64,000 nt of DNA from the NCBI RefSeq assembly GCF_964204645.1, contig NW_027437434.1:62001-126000 (forward strand), in the 5' to 3' direction. This DNA comes from Tubulanus polymorphus. Lineage: Eukaryota; Animalia; Nemertea. A program made the position numbers and the translations under genes. Below are positions 1,261 to 47,050 of the stretch, piece after piece. Within the stretch, counting starts at the first letter, position 1; each line of letters starts with the position of its first letter. The notes beneath the pieces were generated by a model. That model was not told where the DNA came from and made no database searches. It worked only from the letters and a program-made list of their open reading frames with translations.

Positions 1261-2581
1261 CAATTATACAGGGTATATCATTATTCAAGCAAACTTCTAT
1301 CAAATATTAGGCTAATTAATTAATTGTCTGTTTGCTGAAATGCTGACTCACGGTGAGTCGATAGGTAGGTAGACATTTTTAAGCAGAACTTTAGGGCAAA
1401 ATTATTTTATCACTTTTTTCTACATTGAAAACAATATGACCAATCTGCGTGGTGCACAGGAAATTTGTCTCATTTAAGAATAATTTTACTGTTTTAACTT
1501 CATATGGAGCGTCATCCCTGTGTTCAAAATGAAACAATACATTTGATATAAAATTACTTGGATACAAACTTACTTGGATTTGAAGTGAGCGCTCAAGTCT
1601 GTCACTGTCCTACTTTTGACACGGGAGCCTCCTGTGTACACGATAACTCAAAAATCGTTTGAGACAATTTCGTGAAATTTTTATGGTTTGTGCATAATTG
1701 TATGGTGGGGAACCCTTTTGGGGAATCTATGATTCAAGATGGCCGAATTATGACCTATTTTTGATATGTGAACTACCAATGTACGTGCCAAAAATCGTTT
1801 GAGAACATTTCATGAAATTTATATGAGATATGTATGATAGTATGATGTGAAACCTTATTGTTTTGGGGACTTCTCCAATTCAAGATGGCCGACACCATCT
1901 ACCTTTGACGCAGGAACTTCCCGTATACACGATGACTCGCCAAACCGTTGCGATAAATTCATGAAATTTTTATGATATGTGTATGATAATATGAAAAGGA
2001 ACTGTATTGTTCTGGTAAAAATGGCATGTTTTGAACTTTTTATTGATACAAAGTCTTCTGTACTTATTGCAGATACTTGATCTGTTTCTTCACTCACCTG
2101 GTTTATTGCTGTGTGCATGAGCGTGCATTTTGATACAACTATGTTTATTTTCTACTTGGGTCAATAGTACAGTAATCAGGAAGTTGAGTCAACTCATCAA
2201 CTTCACTTCAAAAAGTTGTGTGCGTGAACCGAGCATAGCAAACTCTGGTGCATGTGGCAAATCATTTTACTGCTATATTGCCAACAGGGATATGTAAGCA
2301 ACTACTTATTTACACTGTTCCTATATCCTCTCAATAGGCCCATAACTCATTAGCCCCACAATTCATTCCACATCCCATTGGGCCACATCTGATAAGTCCA
2401 ACGTCAAACCAACCGCATACACAAGATGAGGGGTTATGTGAATAGGTTAATTTGAGGTATGAACTTGAACATTGCTTGCTCATGTGTGCTTTATACACTG
2501 AGCTCATGCATTATATTTATGCTCAATGATAATAAACATTCATTAATACTTGCTTCTCTTTTTCCTTCCTCATCGCTGCAG

Positions 2582-2654
2582 TTGTTCAAATCGCTGACAT
2601 TATGCTGTTCAGTAAAGCTAACTATAAATGTACAGTTGCCGAACTGGAGACGGA
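2582..2654 (+). CDS. beta-arrestin internal exon, variant A (putative mutually exclusive exon): (V)VQIADIMLFSKANYKCTVAELET(E)
   Basis: Polypyrimidine tract plus cag acceptor (2579-2581), gtaagt donor (2655). 73 nt, phase 1 to phase 2. Paralogous to exon 4158-4230 and splices in frame to exon 12008. Confidence 0.85.
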
Positions 2655-4157
2655 GTAAGTGGTGCCACCTACCAGGATTATCCCATTATTTGTATATGTT
2701 GCGTTTTTGTCAATATTATTTTTATTGGTTTTTATTTTCAGTATTTAATTTTACGTAGTATTGATGTACCAGACGTGTAAACTGTTGTTCTGGCCCTAGC
2801 ATTACATGTGAGTTAAGTTTGACGCAAATTTAATTCATTTCCAATTGTTTTAATTCCAAAGAATTCTTTATAACTTGTGTGACGAGTATGCTATGGTTTT
2901 GAGTTTAGAAAGTTGAAATTATTTTATTTTCGATAACCTTACCTAGAGGGTCAAGTTTTAACTCACATCTGTGTAACAGGGTTCTGGTTGTTGCTTGTTA
3001 TGCCTTGGCAGCTGTGATGATTTCTGTAATTTTAGATATGATAGTTTCCCCACATTCATTCCACTTTTAGTTCGACCATGGCAGGGGAAGATTTAAATAT
3101 CATCCTCTTAAAGATTGCATCTTCTTGGATGCATTTTTTAAAAATGTTCTGACATCAATATTTGCAGCCTTTGGTATAGTTGCTTCAATCAAAATTCAAT
3201 GAAAAATGTCTTACTTTTTACTTGCGCATCACAGATCCTTTCAACAGATATTTTAACTATCCTGCCAGGGCTGACATCACACATCTGGTACATCACGCTT
3301 CACAGAGTTTGATGATTTTTATTATCTCAATGTCAATTATGTATTCATTCATTGATTTTTCTCACTGCTGTTGTTTAGAAATATGTATGTTTTTCGCCTG
3401 TCAACTCTCTTTTAGCTCTGTTTTTCAAATCTCTTTTTTAGCTATGAAAAAAATCTGCTTTGCCTTGAAAGTGAAATTGAACGACAAAAAGGTTTTAATG
3501 GGATTATGAAAACTTTGTAATAAAATGGTCAACACTTTGGAAATTCAATTTTGAATTTTAGTTAAAAATTTGGTGTTATGCTGGGCTGTGTCTATAAGGG
3601 GGATGTTGTAAGGTTCAATGATCTACCTTTGGTTTGGTGATATTACTAGCAAGTCGTCCACCAGATGCCATTAGTGTGCTGTAGGACATTATTTTGTCAT
3701 AGCTTTCTGTCAAGTTGTTTAGACCAGATTAGCCTATAGCGATTCTAATTTAAGGCCTTTAAAGCCAGTCCAAGCTGATCACACAACTAAAGCGTTAAAT
3801 GCCCCAATTTAGAGAGCATTTTGAAATCTTAAACCCCCAACATTGACTGGCTTGTCCAGTTCCTTGTTTCACTTTTGTGTCTGTGGATTTGACTCTAGAT
3901 TTAGATAATCAAACATATACTGATTTTAACTCGTCACCTACTCAAAACCTGGTCCAACTCAATAGACATAGCTCTAGGGAGTTTCGTTATACCATATATA
4001 CTGGTTTTCGCACAATTTCACCTCATGTATCGAAAAATGCCACTGGCAGGTACAGCAGATTGAGTATGTTAGACAATTGTTAAATCAATGTTGATGTTTT
4101 TTTCCCCTCAAAAAGCTTTTTATGTTTAGTTTTCGTTCATCCTTCATTATTTCACAG

Positions 4158-4230
4158 TTCGACAATTCGCCGATATTTGTTTGTTTTCTACTGCTCAATA
4201 CAAGTGCACTGTTGCCGAACTGGAAAGCGA
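4158..4230 (+). CDS. ARRB: beta-arrestin internal exon, variant B (canonical): (V)RQFADICLFSTAQYKCTVAELES(E)
   Basis: ttcacag acceptor, gtaagt donor. Peptide matches beta-arrestin [20 protein letters not shown]. Confidence 0.95.
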
Positions 4231-5241
4231 GTAAGTTTATTTGATGGGTTCCCTCTATCTGCCACTTCAGATCACTTTTCCAGATCAACTACCCAGGACT
4301 CAGTTTCACAAAAATAAATTCCCTTCAGACAGATTGAATTTTGTCATCTATTCTGTTATCTGTTCTGTTATTCAGCAATTATTTGGGCCATCTCAAATTA
4401 AGGCCCTAGATTTTGATCTTAACGTTCATGTTTAATCTAGCAAACAAGTAGCCTATCTGCTGTCTATGTACAGCCAAACCTGCTTAGCCAAAATTGGTTT
4501 ATTCCAGATATTCATTTAATCCAGGTCTAATCTAGTATCACTAAGAAATTGGTTTAGTTACTAATGGTTTCTGGATACGTGATACAAAAGCCCACTACCT
4601 GCATGAGCAAATTTGAAAACAATAACTTTTTAAGATCAGAAACAAACTAATTCTAAAAAGAAGACTGGGCATGCTTTTATAAACAAACCACTGAGCTTGG
4701 AGGCTGTGTTACATATTCTAAGCTGAGAATTTTTTGATAGACATAGATTCATTATGGTGCTAACAAATTGAAAGTATCTGTAGACCTCAATCAAATTCTC
4801 TCATTTAAGTTTGATATCTTTGAACTGAGACTTGCTTTACTTGCTTTAGAAAGAGAAATGCACTCAGTGCACTCTGTGCAGCTGAGTCCACTTTCTTGAT
4901 TGAAACCTTTTACCCTTACAAAGCCCAACTCGGAAAGCTTTGCCATAAAGGTTTGGGTCCTTCATCATATTTTAATTCATTTATCAAGTGGGCCATAATT
5001 TCCACCTTTTAAGTCATTTTTTTCCTTTCTGTGATATATGTATCAATCAAAATAATTTTAGTGTTGTATTTTGTTGTTTCAAAAAAATATCCCTTAAAGT
5101 GTGGTGAAATTGCATGACACTTGTATTATTTTGAATTAGAACATTTCAAATAAGTAAATTTTTTAGATACAGTTGTTGAAATATTTGTTTGAATTATTAT
5201 CTTCAGATCAATGTCTTCTGGCTTTTTAATTGTGCCATTTT

Positions 5242-7427
5242 TAGCCTACTTGGGACTTTAGTCCCAGCAGGCAATACGGGATATCGACAAACTCAAGTTC
5301 TGAAATTTCTCGTTTGATGGCGCTAGTCAGAACCGGAAATTGTAACCTAAATCTGGCATGTTCTAGTTCATTTGCAATAAAAATCACGCGGATCAAGCTT
5401 TTAGTTAGAGATATTTTACTTACTATACATCGTCACACGTAATCCTTTAAGTATGATATCCTGGCAATGTGTTGGGTTCGATAAAAGAAAACTTCAAACG
5501 CTAAAGATTGCTTAAAATGTCAAAAAATTACCAATAATCACAAATTTAGCGATGACGTTCGAAGCAGCAAACGAAAGTAAAGACTGGTGCCGGGTGTCAT
5601 CACTTCGTTGTTCACTTCAAGACTCTAAGGTGAATTTATTGCTGACTACACTGATAAATACGAAATAATATTAAGAAATAAAATTGATTTTTGAAGGAAT
5701 GCAATCGTAGATCCATAATAAAAATATGATAAGTATCAGGACTCGAACCGACAATCAAAAATTGGGTCGTCATGTGCTGCCACCATGTGATACCTGGCAA
5801 CCAGTCTTTACATCGTCAGCTGTCACAAAATGTTTTCGATGATTTTAGGACATTTATAGTGATTTCTAGCCTTTGTAGTGAGGTTTTATCGAATCCAACA
5901 TAACGGTAAAATATCACATTGGAAGGATTTATCATGACGATACATAGTAAGTAAAAAAACGCTCATCAAAAACCTGAAGCGAGAGATCTTTATTGCAAAT
6001 GAACTAAAACATGGTGGATTTAGGGTCCAATTTCCGGTTCTGACTAGCGCCATCAAACCAGAAATTCCAGAACTTGAATTTGTCGATATCCCGTATTGCG
6101 TTCACTTTTCGTCCGTTGTCCGTCCATAGACGGAATCCAGTTATTTTGGGAAGTTTTAAGAAGCTTCAATGTAATGCCTTGATATTTGGTTTGCACACGT
6201 AATCTATCCTAGACACACCTCAGCCCTAAAACTGGCCTGGTCAGAATCAAGATGGCCGCCTGGCAGCCATTGTTGTTCGCCGAAATCAGCACTTTTCAAA
6301 CATTTTTCGAGGGAAATTCTGAAGACGCTTGGATCAATTTCCTAAATCTTTTGTATATAATTGCATCCCCCTAGGGCCCATTAGCATGTGAAAAATTTGG
6401 GCGATTGTACACAAGATGGCTGTCCTGTGACCTGTTTTTTGCCCGAAAATGTCAATTTTGGTCCGAATTTTGAGTCCTGTAGCTTCTTAATGGATTGCTA
6501 TTTTTCATTTAAATTTGTGATGGGTATTCTATGGAAAGGGATTTTTAATACATCAGACAGGTATTTTTGATCAGCAATTGGCGGTCTTCTTAGTGTCATC
6601 AGTATTCATCTATAGGTGGTAAAACGTTTTTTTTTTTAGGAAAATATCAAGAGGTTTTGACTGATAGGCTGTTATTAGCACTGTCATGAGATACATCTCC
6701 TCACATGGAATTGGAATCACCTAATTCTTTGTTCTTGCCACTAGGGGAAGTTAAATATCGAATGATATATAATTTGTCTATTTATATTGGTACCTAAGCA
6801 GATTTTGTAACCACAATCAATTGCAAAGTTTTAGCTCATGACATGTTTTATTATTGTTGTGAGTTTCAATGTCATTGATTTTGGCATATTATCACCAGGG
6901 GGCGTTGAATGATAGAATTACTTAGTATTTCCACATTATGTTAGTACCTAAACAAATTTTGTTACCACCATTAATTGCAAATTTGTGGCTCATAACATGT
7001 TCATGATTGTGGTGAGTTTCAAGGTGATTGGTTTTTGCATATGGCCGGCAGGGGCATTGAATAATATAATAACTACATATTTCTACATCATATTGGTACC
7101 TATGCATATTTTGTTACCACAATCAATTGCAAAGTTGTAGCTCATGACATTTTCTATGATTGTGGTGAGTTTCAAGGTCATTAGGTTTTACATATGGTCA
7201 CCAGGGGCGTTCAATAGTAGAATAGTTTAGTATTTCCATATCTTATTGGTACCTAGGTATATTTTTTTTATCACAGTCAATTGCTTATAGCGCGTGGCAT
7301 GCTCTATGATTTTGGCGAGTTTCAAGGTCATTGGTTTTTTTATGATCACTTGGGGGCATTTGAAATTGTTAGATTGTGGTATTTGAAACCACCTTCCAAG
7401 GGGGCATGGTGTCCCTGGACCCCTGGT
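5242..7427 (+). mobile_element. Helentron/HINE-like non-autonomous element (family B) with internal ~150-bp tandem subrepeats; interrupted by a foldback element
   Basis: Starts at a T run with the tgggact-tt-agtccca hairpin and ends gcatggtgtccctggacccct. Same family at 55182-56425. Confidence 0.7.
5272..6099. mobile_element. Foldback / long-TIR element
   Basis: caatacgggatatcgacaaa... and ...tttgtcgatatcccgtattg are inverted arms traceable for about 330 bp. The paralogous site near 55210 is empty. Confidence 0.85.
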
Positions 7428-10400
7428 ATTAATCTCGGGCAATCTGTGATGGAATTGTATGTGAAAAATCTTTGCCGTTGACCTGTGACACTGGAGATTA
7501 TTGTCCAAATTGAGGTTATTGTTGAATTTAACCTTGGGGTTTACTCAATTGACATATATTAAACCTGAATTTCTAAGTTGGTATTCATCAAAACATTTTC
7601 CTGGTATGTGTTTAAGAATCCTTAAAGGAAACCCTGATATCTACATATAAATTGTTTATTGTTTATTGTTTGAGGAGAAAACTGGGATATGTTTGATATG
7701 AAATGGGCATCTGATCTAGATGTCAATTGACGTGTGAACAGTTTTCCTCTGTGTATCTGTGCTATAATATGATGATGCTATATTGTTTTGATGTATTTGT
7801 ATCTGTTTTTTTCTCACTATCAGTAGCAGCAACAGGCAAGTTCTCTTTATCATTCATTTACTCGTCTGTTTGTTCTTGTTTTTCTTTTTTAACCATATCA
7901 TTCTTCACACTTAGCATCATGATCCTGCCCCTACCTAACCAAGCCAATCCTGCGCACATGCTAAGAATTTCTGGCTCAGTGAGGCGTTTGTCAATTTCCT
8001 GTGTTAAATCTGACACCAATAAGAGATTCATGTTGAAACCCAAATAATTTTCAACAAATTGTGACAATTAATTAATTGGCTAAATAGGGTGTAGGACTTG
8101 TTAGGCTTAATTATTGAATATATCTCAACACAAGATAATCTGGTGATTTGCTTATGTATTTGGATCAGTCACATAAAGATTTACTTTCCAGTCATTTACA
8201 TATCTTTTAGTATAATCCTAGCATCTTTGTTGCCAAATCGGTAGAGGCAATTTCTCTTGTGAGGAGGATCCAGTACAAGGCTGTATGGAACTTCTTTCTG
8301 CCCCTTTATTAATCTAACAATTAGAAAAAGCTTATTTCCAGGTTGAAAGCTGTTAAAGATTTTTCATAATTTCTCAGATATGAAAAAGTCACTGAGCAGA
8401 TTTCTACAAATACCTCTCATTGGTAATTTAGCATATGCGGGTTTGACTGGCCCTTATACTGGGACTTTCCTTGGCCATCCTTGTGGTGTATGAACTGCCA
8501 ATCCTCTCGAGCAATGCTAGCTTAATCTTCTAACTTTTATTACATGATGATTTAAGTTAAGCTTTTATATTTAGAGTGATTTCATTATGTCTATTGAAAA
8601 TATGTACATATCATAACATTGTTGTTCATATCATAACCAATTTTGAATGTTATTATAATTCAAAGCATGTTCAATGAATGTGACTAAAATAGAATGTCTT
8701 ACTCGAAAATGATTGATTAATCAGGAGCCGGTTGCTCAAAAATAAGCTAAATTGAGCCAATGGTTAACCAATGGTTAAATGGATCCACTAAAGAATTATA
8801 TTGAAAGGTATAGCAACTAGCGGTTAACTTTTGAGCAACTAGCCCATTCGAGGTGACTATTCTTGTTTCTGCCAGTTTCCCGTTTCTGCTAGTTTCCCAT
8901 TTTATATACGTAAAACATATTAATATGTATCAATAATGATTGTTATTGGTGTTTTCGATGAAATTAGATATACATGTACAGACACATCAGGCATGTTGTA
9001 TCCTACCTTTTGAGCGACTGGCCCATTTGAGTTGATTATTAGTGTTTTCTGCTAGTTTCCCTTATTAGATAAAAACATGTTGAAATGTAGGAATTTTGCC
9101 ATTTTATTGTTATAGTTGATTTCGATGATTCTTGATATACTATGGGAAGCGATTCATGCAAAAAACAAGACCATTGATCGGAAGTAGGATAATTGTTTCA
9201 CTGTAGTATATTCCCAAAGGTGTATCTTTAAAGCTAGGTAGCTATTCTGTAACATTGTAGCTAATTTGGTCGCTTCTTCCAGAGTTCACCGTTAGGTATC
9301 GCCATGGAAACGTTTTGGCTGTATCTTTCATTCTTAGTGCAAGAGTTTTATATAAATGATAGGAGAGAAAACTTTGATATATATATATTTTTTTTTGTTC
9401 TGTAGATTGATTTCAATTTTATGCCGCATTAAATTAATGTTGCCAAATGTAAATGGCCCATACAGTCTGATCGACGACAGTACTTCATCACAATTACTTA
9501 TCACACGTATGAGTCCAACGATACCTTTGAAATCACGAAATACTTTCTTCCTATCTGTGAGAAATTCTTAGACATCCATTCATCCATGAAAAAAATTCAA
9601 TGGCCTTAATATATTTCAGGGGTCAGATTCAAAATACATGTCTAATTGAAAAATTATGAAGAAGTTTGAAAAATCCAATAACGTGTTGGTAAAAATATTT
9701 TGATCTATTCTATGCATAAACTGGAGCTAGATTTATACAAGCTCTGTTAAAATCTAAAAAGTCTTATTTCACATTTCAAATTTTCCAGATAGTGATCAGT
9801 AAATTGCCACTGCTTTTGTTATTGTACTTGTCAGAGTGAGTTTGACGAGAAAAAATTTGGAAAAATTATGTGAAAATCCTGGTATTTTGCAATTGAAAAA
9901 TATGCAACAAAAACTAATTGCAAGGGTGGGGAAAAGTGCTTAAGACGACACCTAACAGCAAATATTGGAACCTATGCGCAAATAAGCTACAGAGTTACAA
10001 AATAGCTACGGTACGAAAAAGTGACATCTTCATGTATATACTATGGTGGTGCATAAAACTTTCTTCCTTTGGTACAAAATAACGTCCAAACGAGGCTAAG
10101 TTTCTCTTCATAACCTTTAAAACATTCAATGCAGTAATAAAAGCTCTAACCCTATTGAATTTCATCGGAATCGGTTGCTTATTCATCAATTTAGTTATTT
10201 ATTTGTTGTTGGATCTACTTTTCGTCTCAGGAGAACACATGCATTTTTACGTATATTCATGCTTCAAACAAGTGCTCGTTACAGACTCGCTGCTATGTGG
10301 TGTATTGATCTGCGCATGTATATGAAAAGCTCGTGGCCTAGTTATTAACAAGGCCATGCGCTTAAGTTTTCCTGGAAACTGCAAATTATTCAACTGCCAG

Positions 10401-12007: not shown

Positions 12008-12154
12008 GGAAGGATTTCCAATACAGCCGAGCACTCAAGGTTTCTGTAAAGTCTACTATTTGACTCCACTGCTGTTGAATAATAGAGACAAACGTGGCCT
12101 CGCACTCGATGGAAAGTTGAAACATGAAGACACTAATTTAGCATCATCAACTAT
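12008..12154 (+). CDS. ARRB: beta-arrestin exon: [48 protein letters not shown]
   Basis: ttctag / gtaagc splice sites. Contains the arrestin signature [21 protein letters not shown]; phases fit the neighbouring exons. Confidence 0.97.
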
Positions 12155-14959: not shown

Positions 14960-15850
14960 GCAGACGCTTTTCGTCATAGCATCTCATCAGCAGCAAACTA
15001 TCCACTGAAGAAGACTCAGATAACAAATACACGCGCCCCTGCAACTAATCTAGATGTCAACTCTGCCCTCTCATCAACTCATCACCGACCGTCACCGCAG
15101 CCAACAACCAACAACTCAAAGTCACTGGACCCTACACATGCGACTCCACCAACGTTGTTTATGCCATCACATGCGATATGTGCCCTGGAACCATCTACAT
15201 CGGAGAAACTGGACAAACATTACGTCAACGCTTGAACGGTCACAAATTTGATCAGACACAAGAAAATGGATAAACCTATCATTTCAATCTTCCGAACCAC
15301 ATAATCAGAAACCTAAAAGTGACCGCGTTACATAAAATGAACACTTCTAATAAGCATTCGAGCGAAATCATGGAAAAAAAACTTATTCAACGCGGTGATA
15401 CTGTTAATCGTGGCCTCAATGGCGATCTAGGATTCATGTCCCACTACAGAACGTTATTTCGTTTGTTATTCATTGTATCTGGACTTATCTCGGACTTCCA
15501 TTTCTTGTTATTCGTTGCTCTTAGATACTATCTGTTTATTTTACTTTGATATAGTTTCATTTTGATTTATTTCTCTTTGATTTGTTTTAGTTTGTTGTTC
15601 CTTAATTAATTGATTATCTACTCATTCACTTAGTTATTAATTATCATGTCACTCATCATTTATTTGTAATTACTCTTCTCACTCAGTTTCAGTTCTCTGT
15701 AATTAGTGTCAGTCTACCTATAAATACTGTTGTTTTTCTATTGACTATACTCATTCACCTGATGAAGCTTCTATTCATTAGAAGCGAAAGCTCGTGCGTC
15801 AAATAAATAGTTAACCTATACAGTACTACTCGTCTCGTTACTTATTGTAT
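14960..15850 (+). mobile_element. 5'-truncated Penelope-like retroelement: degenerate GIY-YIG endonuclease plus pseudo-LTR
   Basis: Translation RCQLCPLI...YTCDSTNVVYAITCDMCPGTIYIGETGQTLRQRLNGHK...HFNLPNH...GLN. TATAAA at about 15719, hammerhead at 15756, AATAAA at 15802. Confidence 0.9.
15756..15796 (+). ncRNA. Minimal type I hammerhead ribozyme
   Basis: cac-CTGATGA-a-gcttcta(ttcat)tagaagc-GAAA-gc-TC-gtg: conserved core, 7-bp stem II, palindromic AGCT mini stem III, cac/gtg stem I. Confidence 0.85.
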
Positions 15851-23357: not shown

Positions 23358-23444
23358 ATTATCGGACCAAAATCAGAAAGAAAATCTTGGTATTGTTGTT
23401 CAGTACAAAGTGAAAGTTCGACTTATTCTTGGACTAGTAGCAGG
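23358..23444 (+). CDS. ARRB: beta-arrestin exon: (I)LSDQNQKENLGIVVQYKVKVRLILGLVA(G)
   Basis: ttgcag / gtaagt splice sites, 87 nt, phase 2-2. Matches the arrestin LGIxVxYKVKVKL strand. Confidence 0.96.
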
Positions 23445-25282: not shown

Positions 25283-25423
25283 TGAATTGGCAGTTGAGTT
25301 ACCATTTACTATCACGCATCCAAAACCTCTTGAATCTCCACCTCCAAGTCGACCAATCAGCGCAGTGGCTCCTGGTTCAAACGAACCACCTATAGATACT
25401 AATCTTATACAACTTGAAACAAA
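25283..25423 (+). CDS. ARRB: beta-arrestin exon: ELAVELPFTITHPKP...IDTNLIQLET (clathrin box LIQLE)
   Basis: tttcag / gtaagt splice sites, 141 nt. VELPF-HPKP motif and LxxLE clathrin-binding box. Confidence 0.96.
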
Positions 25424-25844
25424 GTAAGTGTATGAAATTTAAACTATTTTGAAATCTCACAAATGGACTGATTATGAAACAGTGCTACCAGCTATTTGCC
25501 ATCAATATTAGGCCTATAGATATTATTGACAGATACTATAGAAAGATTAGATGAAGGGTTTAGACGAGTTGCCTGGTGTGATAAGTTAATCATAGGGGTC
25601 GATTGAGCGCTATCACAAGTATCGCAGTGCTACTAAGAAAATTTCTTATACTACAGCTAAGGATCTCAGTATCAAATTGCAGTACTGCCATTTGACTCAA
25701 TGTATTTGCAGTACTCGCTGTTAATTACCATTGTATTGCAAGCAGAAGGTAAAAATGAAAAATAAATCGGCCACAACATCTCATTGTTACCGTATTCGCG
25801 CGTGCCAGAAGAGTGCTGTCACCAAGTGACTGCTATATATGTAA

Positions 25845-30633: not shown

Positions 30634-30730
30634 TGGTGAAGCGCTCTTTGACCATGACGATGATTTGATATTCGAAGATTTTGCCCGGCTGCGTTTGAAG
30701 GGACACGATGGCGATGACACTGAGGCCTGA
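30634..30730 (+). CDS. ARRB: beta-arrestin last coding exon: (N)GEALFDHDDDLIFEDFARLRLKGHDGDDTEA*
   Basis: tttcag acceptor, AP2-binding DDxxFEDFARxR motif, TGA stop at 30728-30730. Confidence 0.97.
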
Positions 30731-35400: not shown

Positions 35401-36289
35401 TGTTATGATTGTTATACATGTTAAGATTAACTCATTGTGCATTTCTATATTACCTTGATTTACTGAAGATCCTCTGACCTACAGCTTTGGGGATCACCTC
35501 ATAATCTATATCTGTCTATGTATGTAGTGTGTACTATTTAGTGGTCAACCATATTATTATTATTAATATTGGATGGTTCTGATTGTTAGAGAAGTAAAGA
35601 ATAAAGGGAGTTAAGTGTATATGGAAATGTATTTTAGATGTTGTTGAAGTTTCTTTTGTGTGAAAGCACCTCTACGGGCGTACTCTTTTATGACCTCCGA
35701 AGTCTATGTCCGAAATCTCCGGTTGGCTCCACACAAAATCCGAATCACACCACCTCGACAGAAAGGAGGTTTCGGAGACTCCAAAAAGTCACGTGACCAA
35801 TAAAAGAGTACGATTGGAGGCAAACGGATTCTCCGATCTGATAAAAGAGTTCGCCCTAGGAAATCATCGTCAGGAGTGCGCTTCAGGCATATTCCCTCGA
35901 CAGGGATCCGAACCTGATGGCATCGATAGACTAAATTACGGTCAAAACGTCCTCTGTATTATGTCCTCTCCGCGCACAATCAGCGGTGGTAGAGAGGGCG
36001 GCACCTTACGATAGTCACCTTTGAACCTGATGTTTAAAAAAATCTGCGGTCTTTGAGTAAATTTCCAATTTCTTCTGACTTTACTGGTTTTCGTCAAATC
36101 TGCGAAATGGTGTTTTTAGAGCTAAAAAGTAAAATATTTTTTTCCAAACCCAGTCAATATTTTTTTGGTTTTTCTGTAGTATATGCCTTAAATTTTCGCA
36201 GTTTGATGACAGTTTTTTGATTGGTAGTTCTATTTCCTAGTAATTATCGTCGGAATACGGAGAAACGGTTGATTTTCGCAAATGTTTGA

Positions 36290-36705
36290 ATAATGATGAT
36301 AACGACAATCTAATAGTTTTTATTATATCTTTAATAATAAATTAGGTTATGGTAAAATAGAAACTAAGGATTTAGAAACATTAAATTTTAATAAATTTCC
36401 GAAATTCTATGATAATTTAAAACAAGAAAATAATAATGGTTGGGTTTATTTTATTTTAGATAATAGTGAAAGATTTAGTAAAGCTGGTATACAAAGAATA
36501 AATCAATCAATTAGAACTTATTTGATATGTATTCTAGGTGCTCCAATAGATCGATTCCAGAAAACATAGTTATCAAAATTATTTAGATAGATATAGATCA
36601 TAGAAGATATAATTAAAACCAATAATGATAAAAAGTCCCATGAAAATACTAAATTAGCTATAACTTGTATAGGAATTGTAATAGGCGGAATATTATATTT
36701 TAAAT
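36290..36705 (+). pseudogene. Remnant of a Polinton accessory protein with a C-terminal membrane anchor
   Basis: GWVYFILDNSERFSKAGIQRINQSIRTYLICILGA...SHENTKLAITCIGIVIGGILYF. Resembles, from recall, an ORF recurrent in invertebrate Polintons. Confidence 0.55.
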
Positions 36706-36737
36706 TTTAATTTTTTATTATATAAATAGATATTCCA

Positions 36738-38645
36738 ATGGATACTTTTGGTGACGCCCCTGGTATAAGTGATGAACCACAACTTGATTTTCCTGATACA
36801 AGTACCAGTAATGATGATGGATCAGCATATAATAATAATTTAAATAATGATGAAGATGATGATCCATCATATAATTCTAGTTTAGCTGATGAAGATGATG
36901 GTGTAATTAATTACGAAACGCGTGAAAGATTTAAAGAATATATGACAGCTCCCGAAAGGAAAGTTATTAAACCCGTAACATTTAGAAAAGATTTAATGAA
37001 TAGAATAGTAAATACAACTGATCCTTATTTGAAAGAGCAATTATATGGAATGAAAAGTAGAGTAATAGATACAATTGCTAACGAATTATTACCAAAAGAT
37101 GTAATAGATAAAGTTGATACAGAAGAAATTGTAATGCAAATTTTAAAAGATGATCCACATTTCATGAATAATTTAGAATTTAAAAATGATGTATGGTTTT
37201 ATAATGTTGAATTATATAACAAAACTGCATCAATACAATTATCTAGAATGGGTCAAGAAAATATTTTTGAACCTGGAGTGCGAGCAGGATCTACAATTGA
37301 ACGTTCAAAAGGTGGTTCAGAATTTCTCAGAATTATATGGAATGCACTCGATAGAATAAATGAAGAAGAACCAAATGTTGGTATTGATATTAACAAATAT
37401 TCCCCATTTAAAATTTAAATCCTACTTATGTTGATCCAGAAATGGAAAAGTATGGAGATCGATTAGATAAATTAAGAACTGCAACACCAGAAACATCGAG
37501 AAGAGATATTCAACAAATTGATAATGATTCAAGCAATTACAATAAGGAAAACATTAAGATAACTTACTGGATACAATGAATTCATTTGAAGAACAGAGAT
37601 GAGAATTCCCCGCGGATCCGCGGTTTCCCGCGGATTTCAGTATTGAAAAATATCAATTTTCCAAATAGTCCAAAAATGATGTAAATTTATGGGGGGGGGG
37701 GGGGGGGTGATGATCTCACTCAATTGGTCCGGCGCGATCGGTAATCAGGTGAACCGTAAAAGCGTTCAGTGCCTGTTTTACTTATCGTCACGTAAAAGTA
37801 TCGCATTTCAATGCATATTCATTGCAACACAGTGATTTTGTATGTACATTGTACTACGATGAGTTTGTATGTATTTTATCGATCGGTTGCAGACACGCAC
37901 GCACAGCAACAGTAGTAACTTATATAGGTCTACTTACTGTTGCTGCGTGTGTGTGGCGAACGCTTTCGGATATTATACACTACTTGGTGATGATTTTTAG
38001 TGAGCATTCATCGGCGCATTTTTACTGCAATAATTCAGGGCTCGACCCGTAATGCATGAGATGCTGAATGTCATCAAATGAGGATGTACCACATTGGAAC
38101 TAGCCATTACCTTCCAAAATATAATAGTCGTTCATGGGTTCGAGATCGCTCTAAGTGCTCGGAAAACGTATTTAATTTCTTAAATTTTCTTGGGGGAGGG
38201 CCCCCAAACCCCCCCCCCCCGAAATAGCTTCGCGCCTTCCGCGCTCGCTAGTGCTGACGGCGTAGCCGTCAGCTGGTTCGCGTATGTCACTCAAGAAAAA
38301 ATAACCCGCGGATTTTACAGGTCGGCGTTCTCATCCCTGGAAGAAGAGATGCATAGTATTTTAGATACACCCGGTACTGAAACTGGAACAAATCAAATGC
38401 AATCTTTATTAAAAAAAGGATTACTTGATTTAAATGAAGAACAATTAAAAATATTTCCTGAACAAGCACGTAGAGAAATTAAAGGTATGCAAGAATCAGC
38501 TGGTGAAATTGCCAATATCAAGATGAGATTTTCTAAAATAACCATGTTAAAAAAAGAATTAACTGACGCAAATGAAGAATTAAAACAATTAGAATTAAAT
38601 AAAGATCTTCAAGTAATTGATGAAGTTGAATATGAATGCACAAAG
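36738..38645 (+). pseudogene. Polinton hypothetical protein (acidic N-terminus, coiled-coil C-terminus); frameshifted and split by MITE 37594-38339
   Basis: ORF 36738-37418 continues after a frameshift to about 37593 and resumes at 38340 (EEEMHSILDTPG...) with the same AT-rich codon style. Confidence 0.65.
37594..38339. mobile_element. hAT-like MITE with 6-bp TSD gaagaa, inserted in the Polinton
   Basis: gaagaa|cagagatgagaa...ttctcatccctg|gaagaa. Confidence 0.85.
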
Positions 38646-38649
38646 TTAG

Positions 38650-39656
38650 CTTTGAAAAAAAAATTAACTATAAAGATTGGACCAGAAACAGTTTTTTCAT
38701 GAGATGATTATAATTTATTTATGCATTATAAAGATTTATGGTTAACAAAAGAAAATAGAAATAATATGATATTTCAAGGCATCCAATCAGAAAACCCTAA
38801 TAAATTAAGATCAAGAGCTAATGACGCAATAGTAACTCGTACCGCAGATAATTTGATTAAAAAGATTTATGGAAGCAAATATAAAATTCCATTAGACTTT
38901 GAATTGATAAATAATAATGCGCCTTTATATAAATATGCAATTCAAGAAGATATTATATTCGAAATAACATTTGCTCCTGTTAATGAAATTGTATTATCTA
39001 GCGTTGTTAAAGATATGGGTTATAAATTATCGAATATATGTTTAGAATATGACACAGTAACTGATGAAAATATTTCAAGTATAATTCAAACTCAATACAA
39101 TCAAGGATTTTCATTATTATATGATTATATTGATGAATTTAAAACTGTAACTATTAATGCAAGTGATGAAATAATTAATGAGAATATCAACTTCTCAAGA
39201 AGATCTATTAAAGGTATATTAATATTTTTTACAATTGCTACATATTCTAATGGCGCAATACAGGTTGATAATTATTATAATCCTGAAATATCAAAAGTAG
39301 AAATAACTATCGAAGGTATAGGAAATGAAATATTCTGTCAAGGAATGAGAATGATAGAACAATGGCCAGAAATTAGAAAATATTTTATGAATGAAAAAAT
39401 TAAATCATCTGAAAATTGTAATATTAATCAAATTGATTATAATACCGGCAATAAATATGCATTATGGTTAGATTTTAGAACGACAGAGGATAACTTATTA
39501 CATGGTTCTGGGAAGAAATTACCGAACACTAAAGATGGAATACAATTATTCATGAAAAAGAAAAAAGGAGACTAAAATTTCAAAATGCACATTTATATTA
39601 TATCTGACGCGCAATCAAATATCATAAATTCTCAATTGAATAGTGTTATGTATTAA
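38650..39656 (+). pseudogene. Polinton/adintovirus major capsid protein (double jelly-roll, hexon-like); N-terminus lost, with premature stops
   Basis: KKLTIKIG..VFS*DDY..YKDLW, YKIPLDFEL, YKLSNICLEYD, RSIKGIL, YNPEISKVEITIEG, YALWLDFRTTEDNLLHGSG, ...IISDAQ...Y*. Confidence 0.85.
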
Positions 39657-39689
39657 AATTTTAGTTTTCATAAAAAAATTCTATAATAA

Positions 39690-40797
39690 ATGGAAGGAGG
39701 AATATATGAAATACAAAGTCCAAGTGAAATGATATCGGATATATATTATATAATACCTTATGATGAATATAGTAAGTATTTTGGAGAATACTTTAATGAA
39801 TTCAATTATAGAATAAGTAAAATAGAAAAGAATATTGAAACAAAAAAGAAGATAATATTGAAACAAAAATAGGATATAAGAATATTGAAACTAAAATAGA
39901 AGATAATTTTGAAACAAAAATAGAAGATAATGTTATACCTTCTACATCGAATAATGATAAGATTGAACCTAAAATAACAAAACCAAAAAGACAAATGAAA
40001 AATATTGTGATGTATGTAAAGAATATAAAAGTTATAAGAGTTGGGCAACTCATCTTAATTCAATCAAGAATAATAAAATTAAGAATAAGAATATAAATGA
40101 ATTGAATAATAATAGTGAAATTGATAATGATAAAACTGAAGAAGATAATAATAATGATAAATATTGTGAAGAATGTGATATTTAAGTCGTAGTAATTTTT
40201 CAAAACACAAATTAACTCAAATACATTTGGATAATGTAGAAAGAAATATATGTGAAAAGTGTAATGTTGTTGTATTACCTAAAGATAAAATTAAACATGA
40301 TAATTCTTTTGAGCATTCATTAAAAACTGCTGATCCAAAACACCTTTATAGAATACCAACTGGATTTTTTGATATCGAAAATAATAATCATAGGAAATTA
40401 TATAGATCAATATTCATCGATTATGTAAGAAATAATAAAAAAAAGTATTATCAGATGTAAAAAATCGTTGGACAAATATAAATGAATTTCCAGATGATTG
40501 TTCAGGTATACTTAATTTCATCAAATTTAAGGGAGAGATTTTTTAACAGAATTGAAAAAAGTTGCTGAAGATTTTATAAATAAAATTAAAAATGATGCAA
40601 AAAATAAATATAAAAATATAAGTGAAGGTCAATTAAATCAATATATCTATTTAAATTATGAATTGTTTGCTAAAGGTTTGAGGGCTATCAATAGTTATCA
40701 TACCAAACAATTAGGTGAAGTTGAAGGTAATAGAAAATTAGAAGAATTAAGAGATGCATGGAACAAATTTTTGTTAGAATTAGAATCAGAAAAGTAA
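39690..40797 (+). pseudogene. Polinton multi-C2H2 zinc-finger protein, fragmented
   Basis: YCDVC...WATHLNS, YCEEC...KHKLTQIH and ICEKC...KHDNSFEH motifs spread across ORF fragments. Confidence 0.6.
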
Positions 40798-40812
40798 TTT
40801 AAAATATGAATA

Positions 40813-41704
<892 letters not shown>

Positions 41705-41719
41705 ATTATTTGAAATACC

Positions 41720-43453
41720 TTATTTTATAAATTTATATTCATAGGGAAATTGTAGTCTCAGTATTAATTTTGAAACTTTATTACTTTTTAATTTATTCAT
41801 ATATTTATCATGTAATTCAGTAGGTATTATTTTATTTTCTTCCAATGATTGTTAAATAGATTTTCTATCTTTATTGTAGAATAATACTAAAAATCTAATG
41901 TTTTCTCTAAAATCCTTAACAATTGAACTATATTTTTGATTCAAAACCCATGTTGTAATTCCAAAATGTCTCCCAGAGAAAGCTTAATAGCATAGTTCAC
42001 TTTCTCTAAGTTTTGAATCATGTAAATTTGCACAATCATCTATAATGAATAATGTGTTTGATCCTTTATAAAAATCTAATGCTATTTTTATACAATTATC
42101 TCAATTTTCTTTAACTGTTTTAGGATCTAATATAATAAACTTTTTTGACGCCTTATAAAACGTTACCATTATGAAACTTAAACAATGTTAACCATTCAGC
42201 GTCATTTTACAAACGACAACCGTAAATCGATGTGCAAAACGTCACAGGTTTATGTGTACACATACAAGCTATTTGGCAAAATATTATTGATAAAGATGTA
42301 GAATGGCTCCCTGTGATTATATAATGACCTCTATTTGAACGTCGAAATGTTATATTGCATTGAATATCATGATAAGAGGTATTGTAATAGTAAAGGATGT
42401 ATGATTATATCAGGAGCGGCAGGCATAAATAGAAATGATAAGTAAATCGGATTATTCGGTTAAATGGCGGATGTATACACGATTTGGAAGTCTGATATAA
42501 AAGTCAGACCCTGACATGGGGATGCTAGTGGAATGACGAAGCTATCTACGATCTGAGTAGGGCCGGCGTGAATTTCATCGGCGGCTACAAGCGGTCTATA
42601 TAAAAACGTGTAAACAAATAATTTCAATATTCAAATGTTTTAGAAAATATGTTCGATATTAGGGGTATGCAGGTTTCATGAGATTAGCAATCTATAATAG
42701 CATAGCTGTCATATACGGCTCCGCGTCCGCTGATGGCATGTGTATAAGGTGACAATTCAATTCAATACTTTATTGATCCTTATTACATTGAAATTCCGGG
42801 ATGAAATTCCCAAATTCAATAAAGTTACAAATTTTAGAATAAGAAAATACAAGACACATGGGTAATTCATACAGAATAACATGAATAAGTTATTTAAATG
42901 ACGATGTCAACCCAGACTCAAGTCTAGGATATCGAGTGACAGCCAAACCGGGCCCCGGGACCGGGCCGGCTGGCTACACGATATGCTCGAAGTCATGATG
43001 AAGCAGACATCAGAAGAGCTCTTTCTTCAACCATGGAGGCAATGAAGTTGCAGACCAGCTTAGAGCAAAAGTGAATCGAAGTCGGTCACAAGTTGACATT
43101 TTTTTTTAAATTAGACCAGTCGAAGACTGTATCATCGCCAAATCTCATAATTCCCCAAATTTCTTAAAACTTCGATTTCAAATTTGCAATTCCACATTAG
43201 CTTATCCCAGAAATTCTACATTTTTTCGCAGGCGTCAAATAATTTATTAAAGTTAATTTTCTTGTTTATCTTAACTATATCTCTATTATATGTTTTATTC
43301 ATTTCATAAGTGGGGCAGAATAATATAATATTATCAAAAGGATTCTCATAAATAGTTTCTAACAAGTCTAATATGTAATGTGTTTTACCACAGTTGGTTA
43401 CCCCAGTAACTAACATTATTATGCGGTTCAAATATAAATAAATCTTTATTCAT
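41720..43453 (-). pseudogene. Polinton A32/FtsK-like DNA packaging ATPase, split by an insertion
   Basis: Walker A GVTNCGKT (about 43400). After the insertion: Walker B LFIIDD, SGRH and LNQKY..IVKDFRENI. Three in-frame stops and a 5' frameshift. Confidence 0.9.
42135..43247. mobile_element. 1.1-kb TIR element with TA TSD inserted in the ATPase gene
   Basis: ta|ataaacttttttgacgcct...aggcgtcaaataatttat|ta. Removing it restores the frame KKINFILDPK. Confidence 0.75.
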
Positions 43454-44531
43454 TTATTCTTATAATTTTACTAGATAAAATCCATTCATTGAATTTATCA
43501 TCATACCCTTTATATTTCACCAGAGAATACTTTTTCCTTTAAGAGTTTTTTGTTTTCAATACTTTTTCTATTTTGTATTCTATTTCATCTGGATTTGGTA
43601 CAAGTGATAATTCTTGTTCATAGAAATAACCTAATATTTCTTCATTTTTTAAATCTTCTAATTTATAAACAAATGGTTTAGTAAGTATTATCTTTTTAAT
43701 CTTGAATATTTTTTCGGTAAAATTTGGAGTATAACCTTTATAAAAGGTTTTTCTATATTTATATATTCTAACGTATTGTCCAATTTTAAATTTAGGTTCT
43801 CCGAAATCATGTGTAACAATGGCTCCATAATAATTATTCCAAACTATTTCTGAATTATCTTCTTTTCTAGCTTGTATCGGTTTCATATTTATAGCACTAT
43901 GTTTAGAATTATTTTAACCTTTCACTAAATCATCTAATACATCGATATATTTATATGTTTCATTGGCAGTAAAATATTTCCACATTCTAGTTTTCAATGT
44001 TTTATTAAATCTTTCTATGATAGATGCTTTTTTATCTGAGTGTGTTGAAAAATACTCTTCATCGTTATCAGATAATAGTTTTTTAAAATGTTTATTATAA
44101 AATTCCTTACCTTCATCAAATTGTATCTTACCTGGAATAGCTTCTTTAAATATATTTCTAAATGCATTTGTTACTTCTATACCAGTTTTATTTTTGATTG
44201 GAATTGACCATGCGTATCTACTGAATATATCTATAACATTTAATATCCAGAAATATCCTTTGTTGTATTCTTCTAAGTTCTTCATGTCAATCAAATCTGC
44301 TTGCCATTGTTGATCAATGTATGAAACCATAACTTTTCTCGTTAAATAATTTTTATCCATTTTCTTATGGATTTGATATGTTGGTTGATTTTGTAACCAT
44401 ACTCTTAGTTCACTATATTTTATATTTTCTTTATCAGATTTAATTCTATCCCATAATTCTGAAACACTAGAATATGATACTTCACTCTCTGGAATATAAT
44501 ATAAATCTCTTAAATATTGTTCTTTTTTCAT
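43446..44531 (-). pseudogene. Polinton retroviral-like (rve) integrase with C-terminal chromodomain
   Basis: WQADL, DIFSRYAW, QFDEGKEF, IERFNKTLK (DDE triad); FKIGQYVRI, GYFYEQEL, LVKYKGYDDKFNEWI. Stops at 43914 and 43539. Confidence 0.93.
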
Positions 44532-44537
44532 CTTATT

Positions 44538-44897
44538 TTAATCCGTTAAGAATAATCTTGGTTTATTTTCAATGACTTTATCATTTGACTTATTTTCTGG
44601 TATAATAGGTTTATTATCGGAATCATTATTATTAGATTTGAATTTATATTTATATATTACGCCAGAAAATATAATAACTGTTACTAATCCAATTGTAATA
44701 TATAATTTATTATTACTTCCAGCATTAGATGAATCAGATGGATTATCATTCGAATCAATAACAGATAATTTCTGTGGTTCATTTATATCAGTTAATTTCT
44801 TTTTCTTTGCTTTTCTTTAAAGAAGATCTTCTACCCAATTCCCTTTCCCATTTAATTTCTTTTCGAATCTAGGTTTCTTCTTAATATCATCACTCAT
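44538..44897 (-). pseudogene. Small Polinton protein with basic N-terminus and a single TM helix; frameshifted
   Basis: MSDDIKKKPR...ELGRRSSLKKAKK...LYITIGLVTVIIFSGVIY...LFLTD*. Confidence 0.55.
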
Positions 44898-44971
44898 TTA
44901 TTTTACTTAATTTTTGTTCTGATTCAATATCTTCTGATTTATTTTTATCTTTACATACTATAGGTTTAATG

Positions 44972-45454
44972 TTAGAAAATGTTATAACTACAGTAAAAAA
45001 TCAATGTCATTATTCCACCTAATTGGAATGGAGCGTATCCAACCCATTTCTGTAATTCTCTCATAAATAAATAATCATTCTTTAAATCACTGTATAATTT
45101 ATTTTCATCATCAATTGGTATAATCCGGTTACATAATTTGGAGTAACATTTTATAATACCATCACTTATAGAATCGTTTATTCTAGCTAATCTAGCTTCT
45201 TCATATATTTTGAAATGTTTTATTACTTGATCTGGTTTCATGTTATCTAATTCTTGAAAAGTTATAATTCTATTTAAGAATTCCTTAGATTTCCCACCAG
45301 CAATCAATAGTTCTAGATGGTGCTTACATGTTGAATAGTATTCATAATCAATATTATTTTCAATTTTGGTTGGAATATCCTTATTATCACTAATGCCCAA
45401 ATCATCTAAGGTTTTTTCAATATCAATACTATTCTTACTCGATTTCTTTGACAT
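44972..45454 (-). CDS. Polinton conserved hypothetical protein (C-terminal hydrophobic segment)
   Basis: 160-aa ORF with LIAGGKSKEFL...YEEARL...LKND, located in the viral module. Confidence 0.6.
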   Translation of the reverse strand: MSKKSSKNSIDIEKTLDDLGISDNKDIPTKIENNIDYEYYSTCKHHLELLIAGGKSKEFLNRIITFQELDNMKPDQVIKHFKIYEEARLARINDSISDGIIKCYSKLCNRIIPIDDENKLYSDLKNDYLFMRELQKWVGYAPFQLGGIMTLIFYCSYNIF

Positions 45455-46141
45455 TTATATTAGCGAAAAAGTAGAAAAAATTAAACTTATTCTTCAAATG
45501 ATACTAATAACTCTTTGGGTTAATACTAAATTGACTCGGTTAGTTAAAGTTAAAGAATTTCTATTCAAATCTTATCAAAATACAAAGTATTCCCTTTTTG
45601 AAAAGAAATGTTAGATTTTGAATAAAAATATAATAAAATTCACTAGCTACTTGAAGTTATTGTTTTTTTAAATATTTTTTATTTAAATTAGGATTTAGAA
45701 TATCTCACTACCTTTGTCTATCTATAGGAGCAGTTAATATAAGTGTCCAGATAAGTCATTTCGGATCCTTGATATTAAACCTAGTTAATAATCAGAAATA
45801 TTAGAATAGTTAGTTTAATTATTGTTTTACAACCGTTTCTAATTATTCATTATTCAAAATTCTTTGCTTTAATTTTTACAGTCGTTTCTAATTATTACGT
45901 TGAAAGTTGGCAGCACTGAGTGAATTAGATACTGAAATGAAAATTTGAACTGGAATTTGAATTTAATATTCAATTAACATGGATAATTGATTACTGATTT
46001 GATTAAAAATTCGATCATAATTAAGTTAAAAATCCATAATTCATTCATCAGTTTTCATTCTTATATTCTTTTCATTCGGAATAATTTAGAATTTCAAATA
46101 ACGTAAACACCGTTTATATTGACTTCGGTGTTTTAGCTAAG

Positions 46142-46148
46142 TATATAA
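46142..46148 (+). promoter_or_regulatory. TATA box about 31 nt upstream of the structured RNA
   Basis: TATATAA; the first paired G is at 46173. Confidence 0.5.
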
Positions 46149-46172
46149 GGCAATTCATTCGACCACTGAAGT

Positions 46173-46461
46173 GCCGCCGAGCCTGGCTTGCAGGGGCATT
46201 TCGAAAATGCACCTTTGTCCACCCTCTGTGGTTCTCCTTCAGTTTCGACTTTCGATCCTCCCTTCGGGGGTTAAGGGTTGATAGGAAACGCATTAGGCGC
46301 CTTAAATATAATGTGTTTCCTGTCAACTATTGAAGGAGAATTGGTGAGGCGTGGGTCACAGGGGTGTAAATAGAAATGCTTGGGGATAAGTATCTTGTGG
46401 CGCCTCTCTATAACGGGATGCTTATCCCCTAGAAACTCTGCGAGTCAGGTCGGGTGGTTTT
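46173..46461 (+). ncRNA. Candidate Polinton-encoded structured ncRNA (~290 nt) with twin GGCGCC loops
   Basis: Seven manually paired helices with G-U wobbles, paired 5' and 3' ends, cUUCGg tetraloop, TTTT at 46458-46461. Confidence 0.8.
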
Positions 46462-46742
46462 GCTAAAACTTACCTTAAAACTGAAATTCCTTTTAATCAC
46501 GAGAGAGAATGTATCCTGTGTGTATTGTATGTACTGCGTGCTTAATCCAACTGCTAGCTATCCAATATAACATAACAACAAATGGCAACACCTGTTTGAT
46601 CGATCAATTTTCAAATTAATTACTCCCGTGGATTGAGCGTGTGGCAGATGTTAGGTATATACACATGGTTATAGTTGTTCGTAAAACGACTAAGTGCTTA
46701 TATATACACGTGTGACTCGAGTAGAGTTCTTATCATAAACGC

Positions 46743-47019
46743 TTAAGATTCAACGTGTTTTTCATTCTGTGTTGAATTCCATAATTCAACAAATGCCTTT
46801 GCTTTATCCAGTTGATCTAAATATAATTTCATATCTAGTTTGTTTCCTTTCCTAATATTTTCAAATTTTTCTAAAGGATCTTTGCTTACCATCTTTCTGA
46901 GTTTTATAAGTATAATATTCCGAGAGTTGTTTATTCAATTCACATTTTGAACATTTCTTATGATAAATATTAACAACACTATTTGTAATATTAATAGTTT
47001 GTGATTGTTCCGGCTCCAT
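46743..47019 (-). pseudogene. Small Zn-ribbon protein (KCSKC..K.LSEY....DG motif), about 90 aa, one frameshift
   Basis: MEPEQSQ...KKCSKCELNKQLSEYYTYKTQKDGKQRS.../ENIRKGNK...HVES*. Absent from the ORF track because of the frameshift. Confidence 0.55.
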
Positions 47020-47050
47020 TTATTAAACATATTTTTTTACTAAAATTTGA

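Follow-up and report, generated by a model that had tools for sequence, protein, structure and literature searches.

Duplicated, apparently mutually exclusive exons exchange the phosphoinositide-site and C-loop segment of a β-arrestin in the nemertean Tubulanus polymorphus

Tandem exon duplication underlies the classical mutually exclusive exon pairs, such as SNAP25 5a/5b, PKM 9/10, CaV1.2 8/8a and that of Drosophila 14-3-3zeta. Non-visual arrestins are also diversified by splicing in vertebrates, where ARRB1 1A/1B and the ARRB2 variants are cassette insertions in the C-terminal part of the protein. In β-arrestin-1, K232, R236 and K250 form the phosphoinositide-binding triad, and Arg236 contacts the PIP2 head group directly; in the 3Q mutant of this triad, PIP2 binding is essentially lost and desensitisation and recruitment to class A receptors are impaired (PMC10030194, PMC12157425). 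The C-loop, residues 241-249, packs against the receptor through contacts that include I241, L243, A247 and Y249 (PMC10447241). Here we describe two tandem exons that encode alternative versions of this segment in a 64,000-nt stretch of T. polymorphus DNA (the window).

The exon pair and its gene

The forward strand of the window carries the 3′ two-thirds of a β-arrestin gene, which consists of very short exons separated by very long introns (Table 1). On the 5′ side of both exon 9A and exon 9B lies a pyrimidine tract with AG, and on the 3′ side GTAAGT. They are identical at 49 of 73 nucleotides, and 17 of the 23 complete codons specify the same amino acid, with six non-synonymous and ten synonymous differences. 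BLASTN of both regions revealed that the likeness ends 3 nt 5′ and 6 nt 3′ of the exons, and the 500-nt flanks share only chance 8-12-mer matches. A first-pass annotation of this DNA, made from the sequence alone, had reported two 73-nt exons of identical phase with strong splice sites, six residue and about ten synonymous differences, and flanking introns that do not align; each of these points was reproduced. No third copy of exon 9 was found in C17:32001-126000, 94 kb of the contig to which the window belongs. The 3′ parts of 9A (2634-2647) and 9B (4210-4223) share 14 identical bases, including four codons identical at synonymous sites, and B orthologs of other species differ at these bases. 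This stretch could be a coincidence, a trace of partial gene conversion, or a splicing signal common to both exons.

Table 1. Features of the β-arrestin gene in the window (positions are those of the window)
Feature	Position	Strand	Description
Exon 9A	2582..2654	+	73 nt; enters in phase 1, leaves in phase 2; Val in place of Arg236 and Lys at 246
A-B intron	2655..4157	+	1503 nt; no alignment to other flanks
Exon 9B	4158..4230	+	73 nt, phases as 9A; canonical type with Arg236
Microexon	7824..7835	+	Optional, 12 nt, adds DSSNR; AG acceptor, GC donor
Exon 10	12008..12154	+	Constitutive; carries TAA (A+B) or TGA (neither)
Exon 11	23358..23444	+	
Exon 12	25283..25423	+	Clathrin-box-like LIQLE
Last coding exon	30634..30730	+	LIFEDFARLRL motif, stop TGA

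To place the pair in its gene, each exon was searched individually, and comparisons over the full length drew on database proteins (P0238, P0287 and others). In tblastn of full-length arrestins against the contig, the arrestin exons run from C17:17824 to window position 30730, and those in the window align along β-arrestins. Exon 8, which encodes KYYHGES...KKIKIS, lies 21 kb upstream of exon 9A, outside the window (L020). A profile search with the exons returned P0238 (XP_074658507, 'arrestin red cell-like isoform X2 [Tubulanus polymorphus]'), which agrees with the exons of the window at 342/347 positions and has Arrestin_N (PF00339) and Arrestin_C (PF02752) domains on record. We take the LIQLE and LIFEDFARLRL sequences, by their motif definitions, to be a clathrin box and an IVFEDFAR-type AP2 motif. 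By its domains and C-terminal motifs, the predicted product is a non-visual (β-) arrestin. A genome DNA search revealed a second copy of the gene at C9:7200583-7202783, 99.35% identical over 5.2 kb and without differences in either exon. This identity marks the 181-kb contig C17 as a haplotig of the gene on C9 (7.19-7.27 Mb). Since genome searches with exon 4 and exon 10 matched these two places only, the animal appears to have a single β-arrestin locus. An intronic ORF at ~15049-15546 contains a GIY-YIG-like motif, presumably of the kind found in Penelope-like retroelements, and similar repeat ORFs recur in the introns. The G+C content drops to 20-31% at ~36000-50000 of the window.

The 90% cluster of P0238 comprises four RefSeq proteins. 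X1 (XP_074658505, P0287) contains exon B and DSSNR, X2 (P0238) contains exon A and DSSNR, and X3 (XP_074658508, P0288) contains exon B without DSSNR. The fourth, a partial model with exon B (XP_074661806, P0289), is the sole RefSeq model on the window's own haplotig. X1, X2 and X3 lie on a 16.5-Mb contig, and each model has A or B, never both. The proposal that one gene would make two arrestin isoforms is supported by X1 and X2, which model both. The first-pass annotation had also joined exon A directly to exon 10; the RefSeq models place the optional microexon between the two. At the microexon junction, small inserts are also present in Haliotis (P0348), Owenia (P0269 vs P0313) and Patella (P0316 vs P0317).

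A 73-nt exon does not hold a whole number of codons, and the double and null forms stop in exon 10; each mRNA therefore needs exactly one of 9A and 9B, as had been proposed. Inclusion of both puts exon 10 in frame 0, where TAA follows after 13 codons; if both are skipped, a TGA is encountered in the same exon. Double and null forms would be removed by nonsense-mediated decay. Steric exclusion and U2/U12 incompatibility are ruled out by the 1.5-kb intron and by the U2-type GT-AG sites at both exons. A docking/selector RNA pairing that could enforce exclusion was not found: the sole candidate was a 17-nt inverted repeat (2762-2778/3279-3295, 94% complementary) inside the A-B intron of Tubulanus. 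The reading frame, as predicted from the genomic sequence, is the only constraint on exclusion shown. Collectively, these results suggest that 9A and 9B are very probably a true mutually exclusive pair in the sole β-arrestin gene, derived from an ancient tandem exon duplication.

The two exon types in other animals

Exon A is conserved in related genomes. In the RefSeq X2 isoform (P0347) of Lineus longissimus, 24 of 25 residues are identical to Tubulanus A, with Leu rather than Val at position 236; the whole proteins are 77% identical. L. longissimus is a nemertean of the other main branch of the phylum. Further relatives were reached via genomic ORFs with an exon-10 equivalent. In two of these from ENA (L022 and L028), tblastn detected exon 8, an A-like exon, exon B and exon 10 in this order, the two middle exons being 73 nt long, bounded by AG and GT and in the same phase. 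Their B exons are identical to the window B at 22-23 of 23 residues, and their A exons are identical to Tubulanus A at 11-12 of 23. B orthologs have a pN of 0-0.03 with saturated pS (0.73-1.05), and A orthologs a pN of 0.16-0.46, well under saturation (0.31-0.46 for the A exons of L022 and L028). In the relative L027, B alone was found and no A exon; its 84-nt exon 8 is present as a tandem duplicate (7908-7991 and 8094-8177, with 102 nt between). The organism represented by L029-31 (JGI/ENA metagenome contigs) has a lone exon 9 of the A type.

Among flatworms, Schistosoma japonicum has exon 8, A (L037:19863-19935), B (25756-25828) and exon 10 in this order, A and B each being 73 nt long and bounded by AG and GT. 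In S. haematobium, S. intercalatum, S. guineensis and Opisthorchis felineus, annotated isoform pairs of one locus differ in exon 9 only. The either/or use of A and B is, in this way, already modelled in the RefSeq and fluke annotations. The monogenean Cichlidogyrus has an A-type exon alone, fused to exon 8, and a word search with this A region matched only itself. In the annelid Owenia fusiformis, an unannotated A exon (L038:61576-61648) lies upstream of B and shares ADIMLFSKA with Tubulanus A; the arrangement from exon 8 to exon 10, the 73-nt length and the AG/GT sites match those of Tubulanus. In the limpet Lottia, exon 8 and B are separated by an interval with a single open 73-nt AG..GT window (L039:15107-15179), which is very divergent and only weakly A-like; since chance windows of this kind occur about 1-3 times per intron, we count it only as a probable A exon. 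No annotated mollusc or Owenia isoform carries A. The crustacean-like arrestin models P0001 (Cyprideis torosa) and P0002 read through two tandem exon-10 equivalents, a hint that this lineage has a duplicated exon pair of its own.

Position 236 separates the two types. Every B exon seen has Arg there, and every A-type exon has another residue (Val, Ile, Thr, Phe, His or Leu), most with Lys or Arg at 246. In L022, L028, Opisthorchis and Lottia, exon A has also lost Lys250. Arg236 is missing as well from the sole exon 9 of a monogenean, of rotifers and of Trichinella.

Function, origin and use of the exchanged segment

To locate the segment in the arrestin structure, we compared both exons with PDB sequences using phmmer. 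Residues 1-20 of B align to residues 236-255 of bovine/human β-arrestin-1 (E 7e-6; 1e-7 for β-arrestin-2), and A aligns to the same β-arrestin-1 stretch more weakly (E 4e-3). Together with the residues known from the literature, this bears out the first-pass assignment of the segment to ARRB1 ~235-259: exon 9 covers the Arg236 strand, all of the C-loop and Lys250. The A/B codon comparison and the alignment likewise agree with its statement that variant A replaces Arg236 with Val and alters the loop. In ARRB1 numbering, the Tubulanus exons differ at 236 (Arg to Val in A), 246 (Thr to Lys), 238, 242, 248 and 258. The C-loop contact residues 241, 243, 247 and 249 are unchanged in A. Lys250 is kept in both versions and Lys232 sits in exon 8, so the K232/R236/K250 triad is complete in the B isoform and has Val at 236 in the A isoform. 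The first-pass annotation had speculated on a photoreceptor or neural isoform. A resemblance of A to vertebrate visual arrestins was considered and dropped, since phmmer of Tubulanus A and Schistosoma A returned β-arrestins first and no vertebrate visual arrestin.

B keeps the canonical, almost invariant sequence, and A would be a working arrestin with a re-arranged basic patch and C-loop. Since A is the only form in some species, it cannot be crippled. Our leading interpretation, which we hold tentatively, is that the A isoform may possess a phosphoinositide site that is weakened or otherwise altered and a receptor-facing C-loop of different shape, changing its need for membrane PIP2 or the receptors that it engages through the core. 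The basic residue gained at 246 might compensate for the loss of Arg236. That an arrestin can work without Arg236, as in the sole exon of the monogenean, the rotifers and Trichinella, weakens the notion that A is simply lipid-blind.

The same observations bear on another explanation, in which the swap is used but not for lipid binding. It would instead adjust how the C-loop meets receptor cores or a different partner, or represent near-neutral isoform drift. Half of the six changes fall in the C-loop (242, 246 and 248), Tubulanus A retains Lys232 and Lys250, and species with an A-type exon alone exist, all of which would fit such a role. Yet loss of Arg236, the very residue in direct contact with the PIP2 head group, is the only state that every A exon shares, and four of the lineages above have lost Lys250 too. 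We regard a purely non-lipid role as unlikely, although it is the alternative that we take most seriously.

How often the pair arose was examined from the exon sequences. Within Tubulanus, A and B are saturated at synonymous sites (pS 0.74), and an omega of 1 was rejected (p 0.007), whereas an omega of 0.5 was not (p 0.19). The conservation of A in other phyla agrees with the earlier suggestion of an old duplication with both copies under selection. A maximum-likelihood tree of the 23 codons placed the nemertean, annelid, flatworm and limpet A exons on one side and all B exons on the other. The A/B label requires two changes on this tree compared to a mean of 6.2 for shuffled labels, and none of 500 shuffles was as low. 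In AU tests, which have little power with 23 columns, neither a single clade of all A exons (p 0.085) nor a flatworm-only A+B duplication (p 0.13) was rejected; an A+B duplication confined to Tubulanus-like species was rejected (p 0.007).

The surviving flatworm-only clade would accommodate a real swap with several origins, by separate duplications in nemerteans, flatworms, annelids and molluscs followed by convergent loss of Arg236. So would the similarity of Tubulanus A to B exons, which at 17/23 is as high as to any A exon, and the long branches of the L022, L028 and Lottia A exons. Against this stand the grouping of A exons from different phyla on the tree, the rejection of the nemertean-type-only clade, the position of A upstream of B in every species examined, and the states that A exons share (a non-Arg residue at 236, Ile or Val at 238, and Lys or Arg at 246). 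Repeated origin appears improbable. A single old duplication, though unproven, is the better reading: the two exons do not vary in order, length or phase, and the A exons agree in state at 236, 238 and 246.

The only sequencing run found to contain exon A, compared with 1500-5500 of the window, proved to be genomic DNA, with one contig covering 2352-5259 unspliced and no joints at the exon borders. It is very improbable that exon A is a duplicate with no use or expressed only as noise, with X2 an annotation artefact and B the only source of protein. A run search that returned only genomic DNA, the strong divergence of the L022 and L028 A exons and the frequency of chance 73-nt windows would permit it, but A is 24/25 identical between two deeply split nemerteans, at least four phyla preserve its length, phase, splice sites and position with unalignable flanks, independent annotations of several flukes hold A isoforms, and Cichlidogyrus and the L029 organism have no exon 9 other than one of the A type.

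A bolder proposal, which in its full form we think rather unlikely, is that the splice switch is older than the split between molluscs, annelids, nemerteans and flatworms and that one gene would supply a PIP2-dependent B arrestin and a PIP2-independent or differently anchored A arrestin. If true, A would be nature's equivalent of the engineered 3Q mutant, and splicing would provide these animals with the class A/class B-like spread of receptor-arrestin behaviour for which vertebrates use paralogs and receptor tails.

Significance and comparison with known systems

Studies of the phosphoinositide site and C-loop have relied on engineered mutants of vertebrate arrestins. A natural gene has here retained two forms of exactly that segment, probably over hundreds of millions of years, with the canonical Arg236 always in one version and always absent from the other. 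The A and B isoforms would offer an existing matched pair with which to study how lipid anchoring and core engagement are adjusted. In schistosomes, the pair concerns a drug-relevant signalling node, and as a rare genomic character the shared exon pair could be scored across spiralian phyla.

The kind of mechanism, mutually exclusive exons, is already known, and the isoforms are already in RefSeq. The Tubulanus X1, X2 and X3 models and Lineus X2 contain the same exons with the same either/or use as found here; they are computed models without a stated function. Full-text searches on arrestin exon duplication or exclusive exons and on Schistosoma β-arrestin splicing found no paper describing the exon pair. 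Like the classical pairs, 9A and 9B are homologous, adjacent and of equal length and phase, they replace one structural element, and the reading frame penalises inclusion of both or neither. They differ from the classical pairs in the gene affected, in being separated by a 1.5-kb intron with U2-type sites at both exons, and in that competing RNA pairing is not established. The ARRB1 1A/1B and ARRB2 variants, unlike 9A/9B, do not swap the Arg236/C-loop segment. A parallel to the A isoform is the engineered 3Q mutant (K232Q/R236Q/K250Q) of β-arrestin-1, in that A lacks the Arg236 contact and the A exons of some species also lack Lys250 (PMC10030194, PMC12157425). In contrast to that mutant, A is natural, and in Tubulanus it loses only one of the three contacts and gains Lys246.
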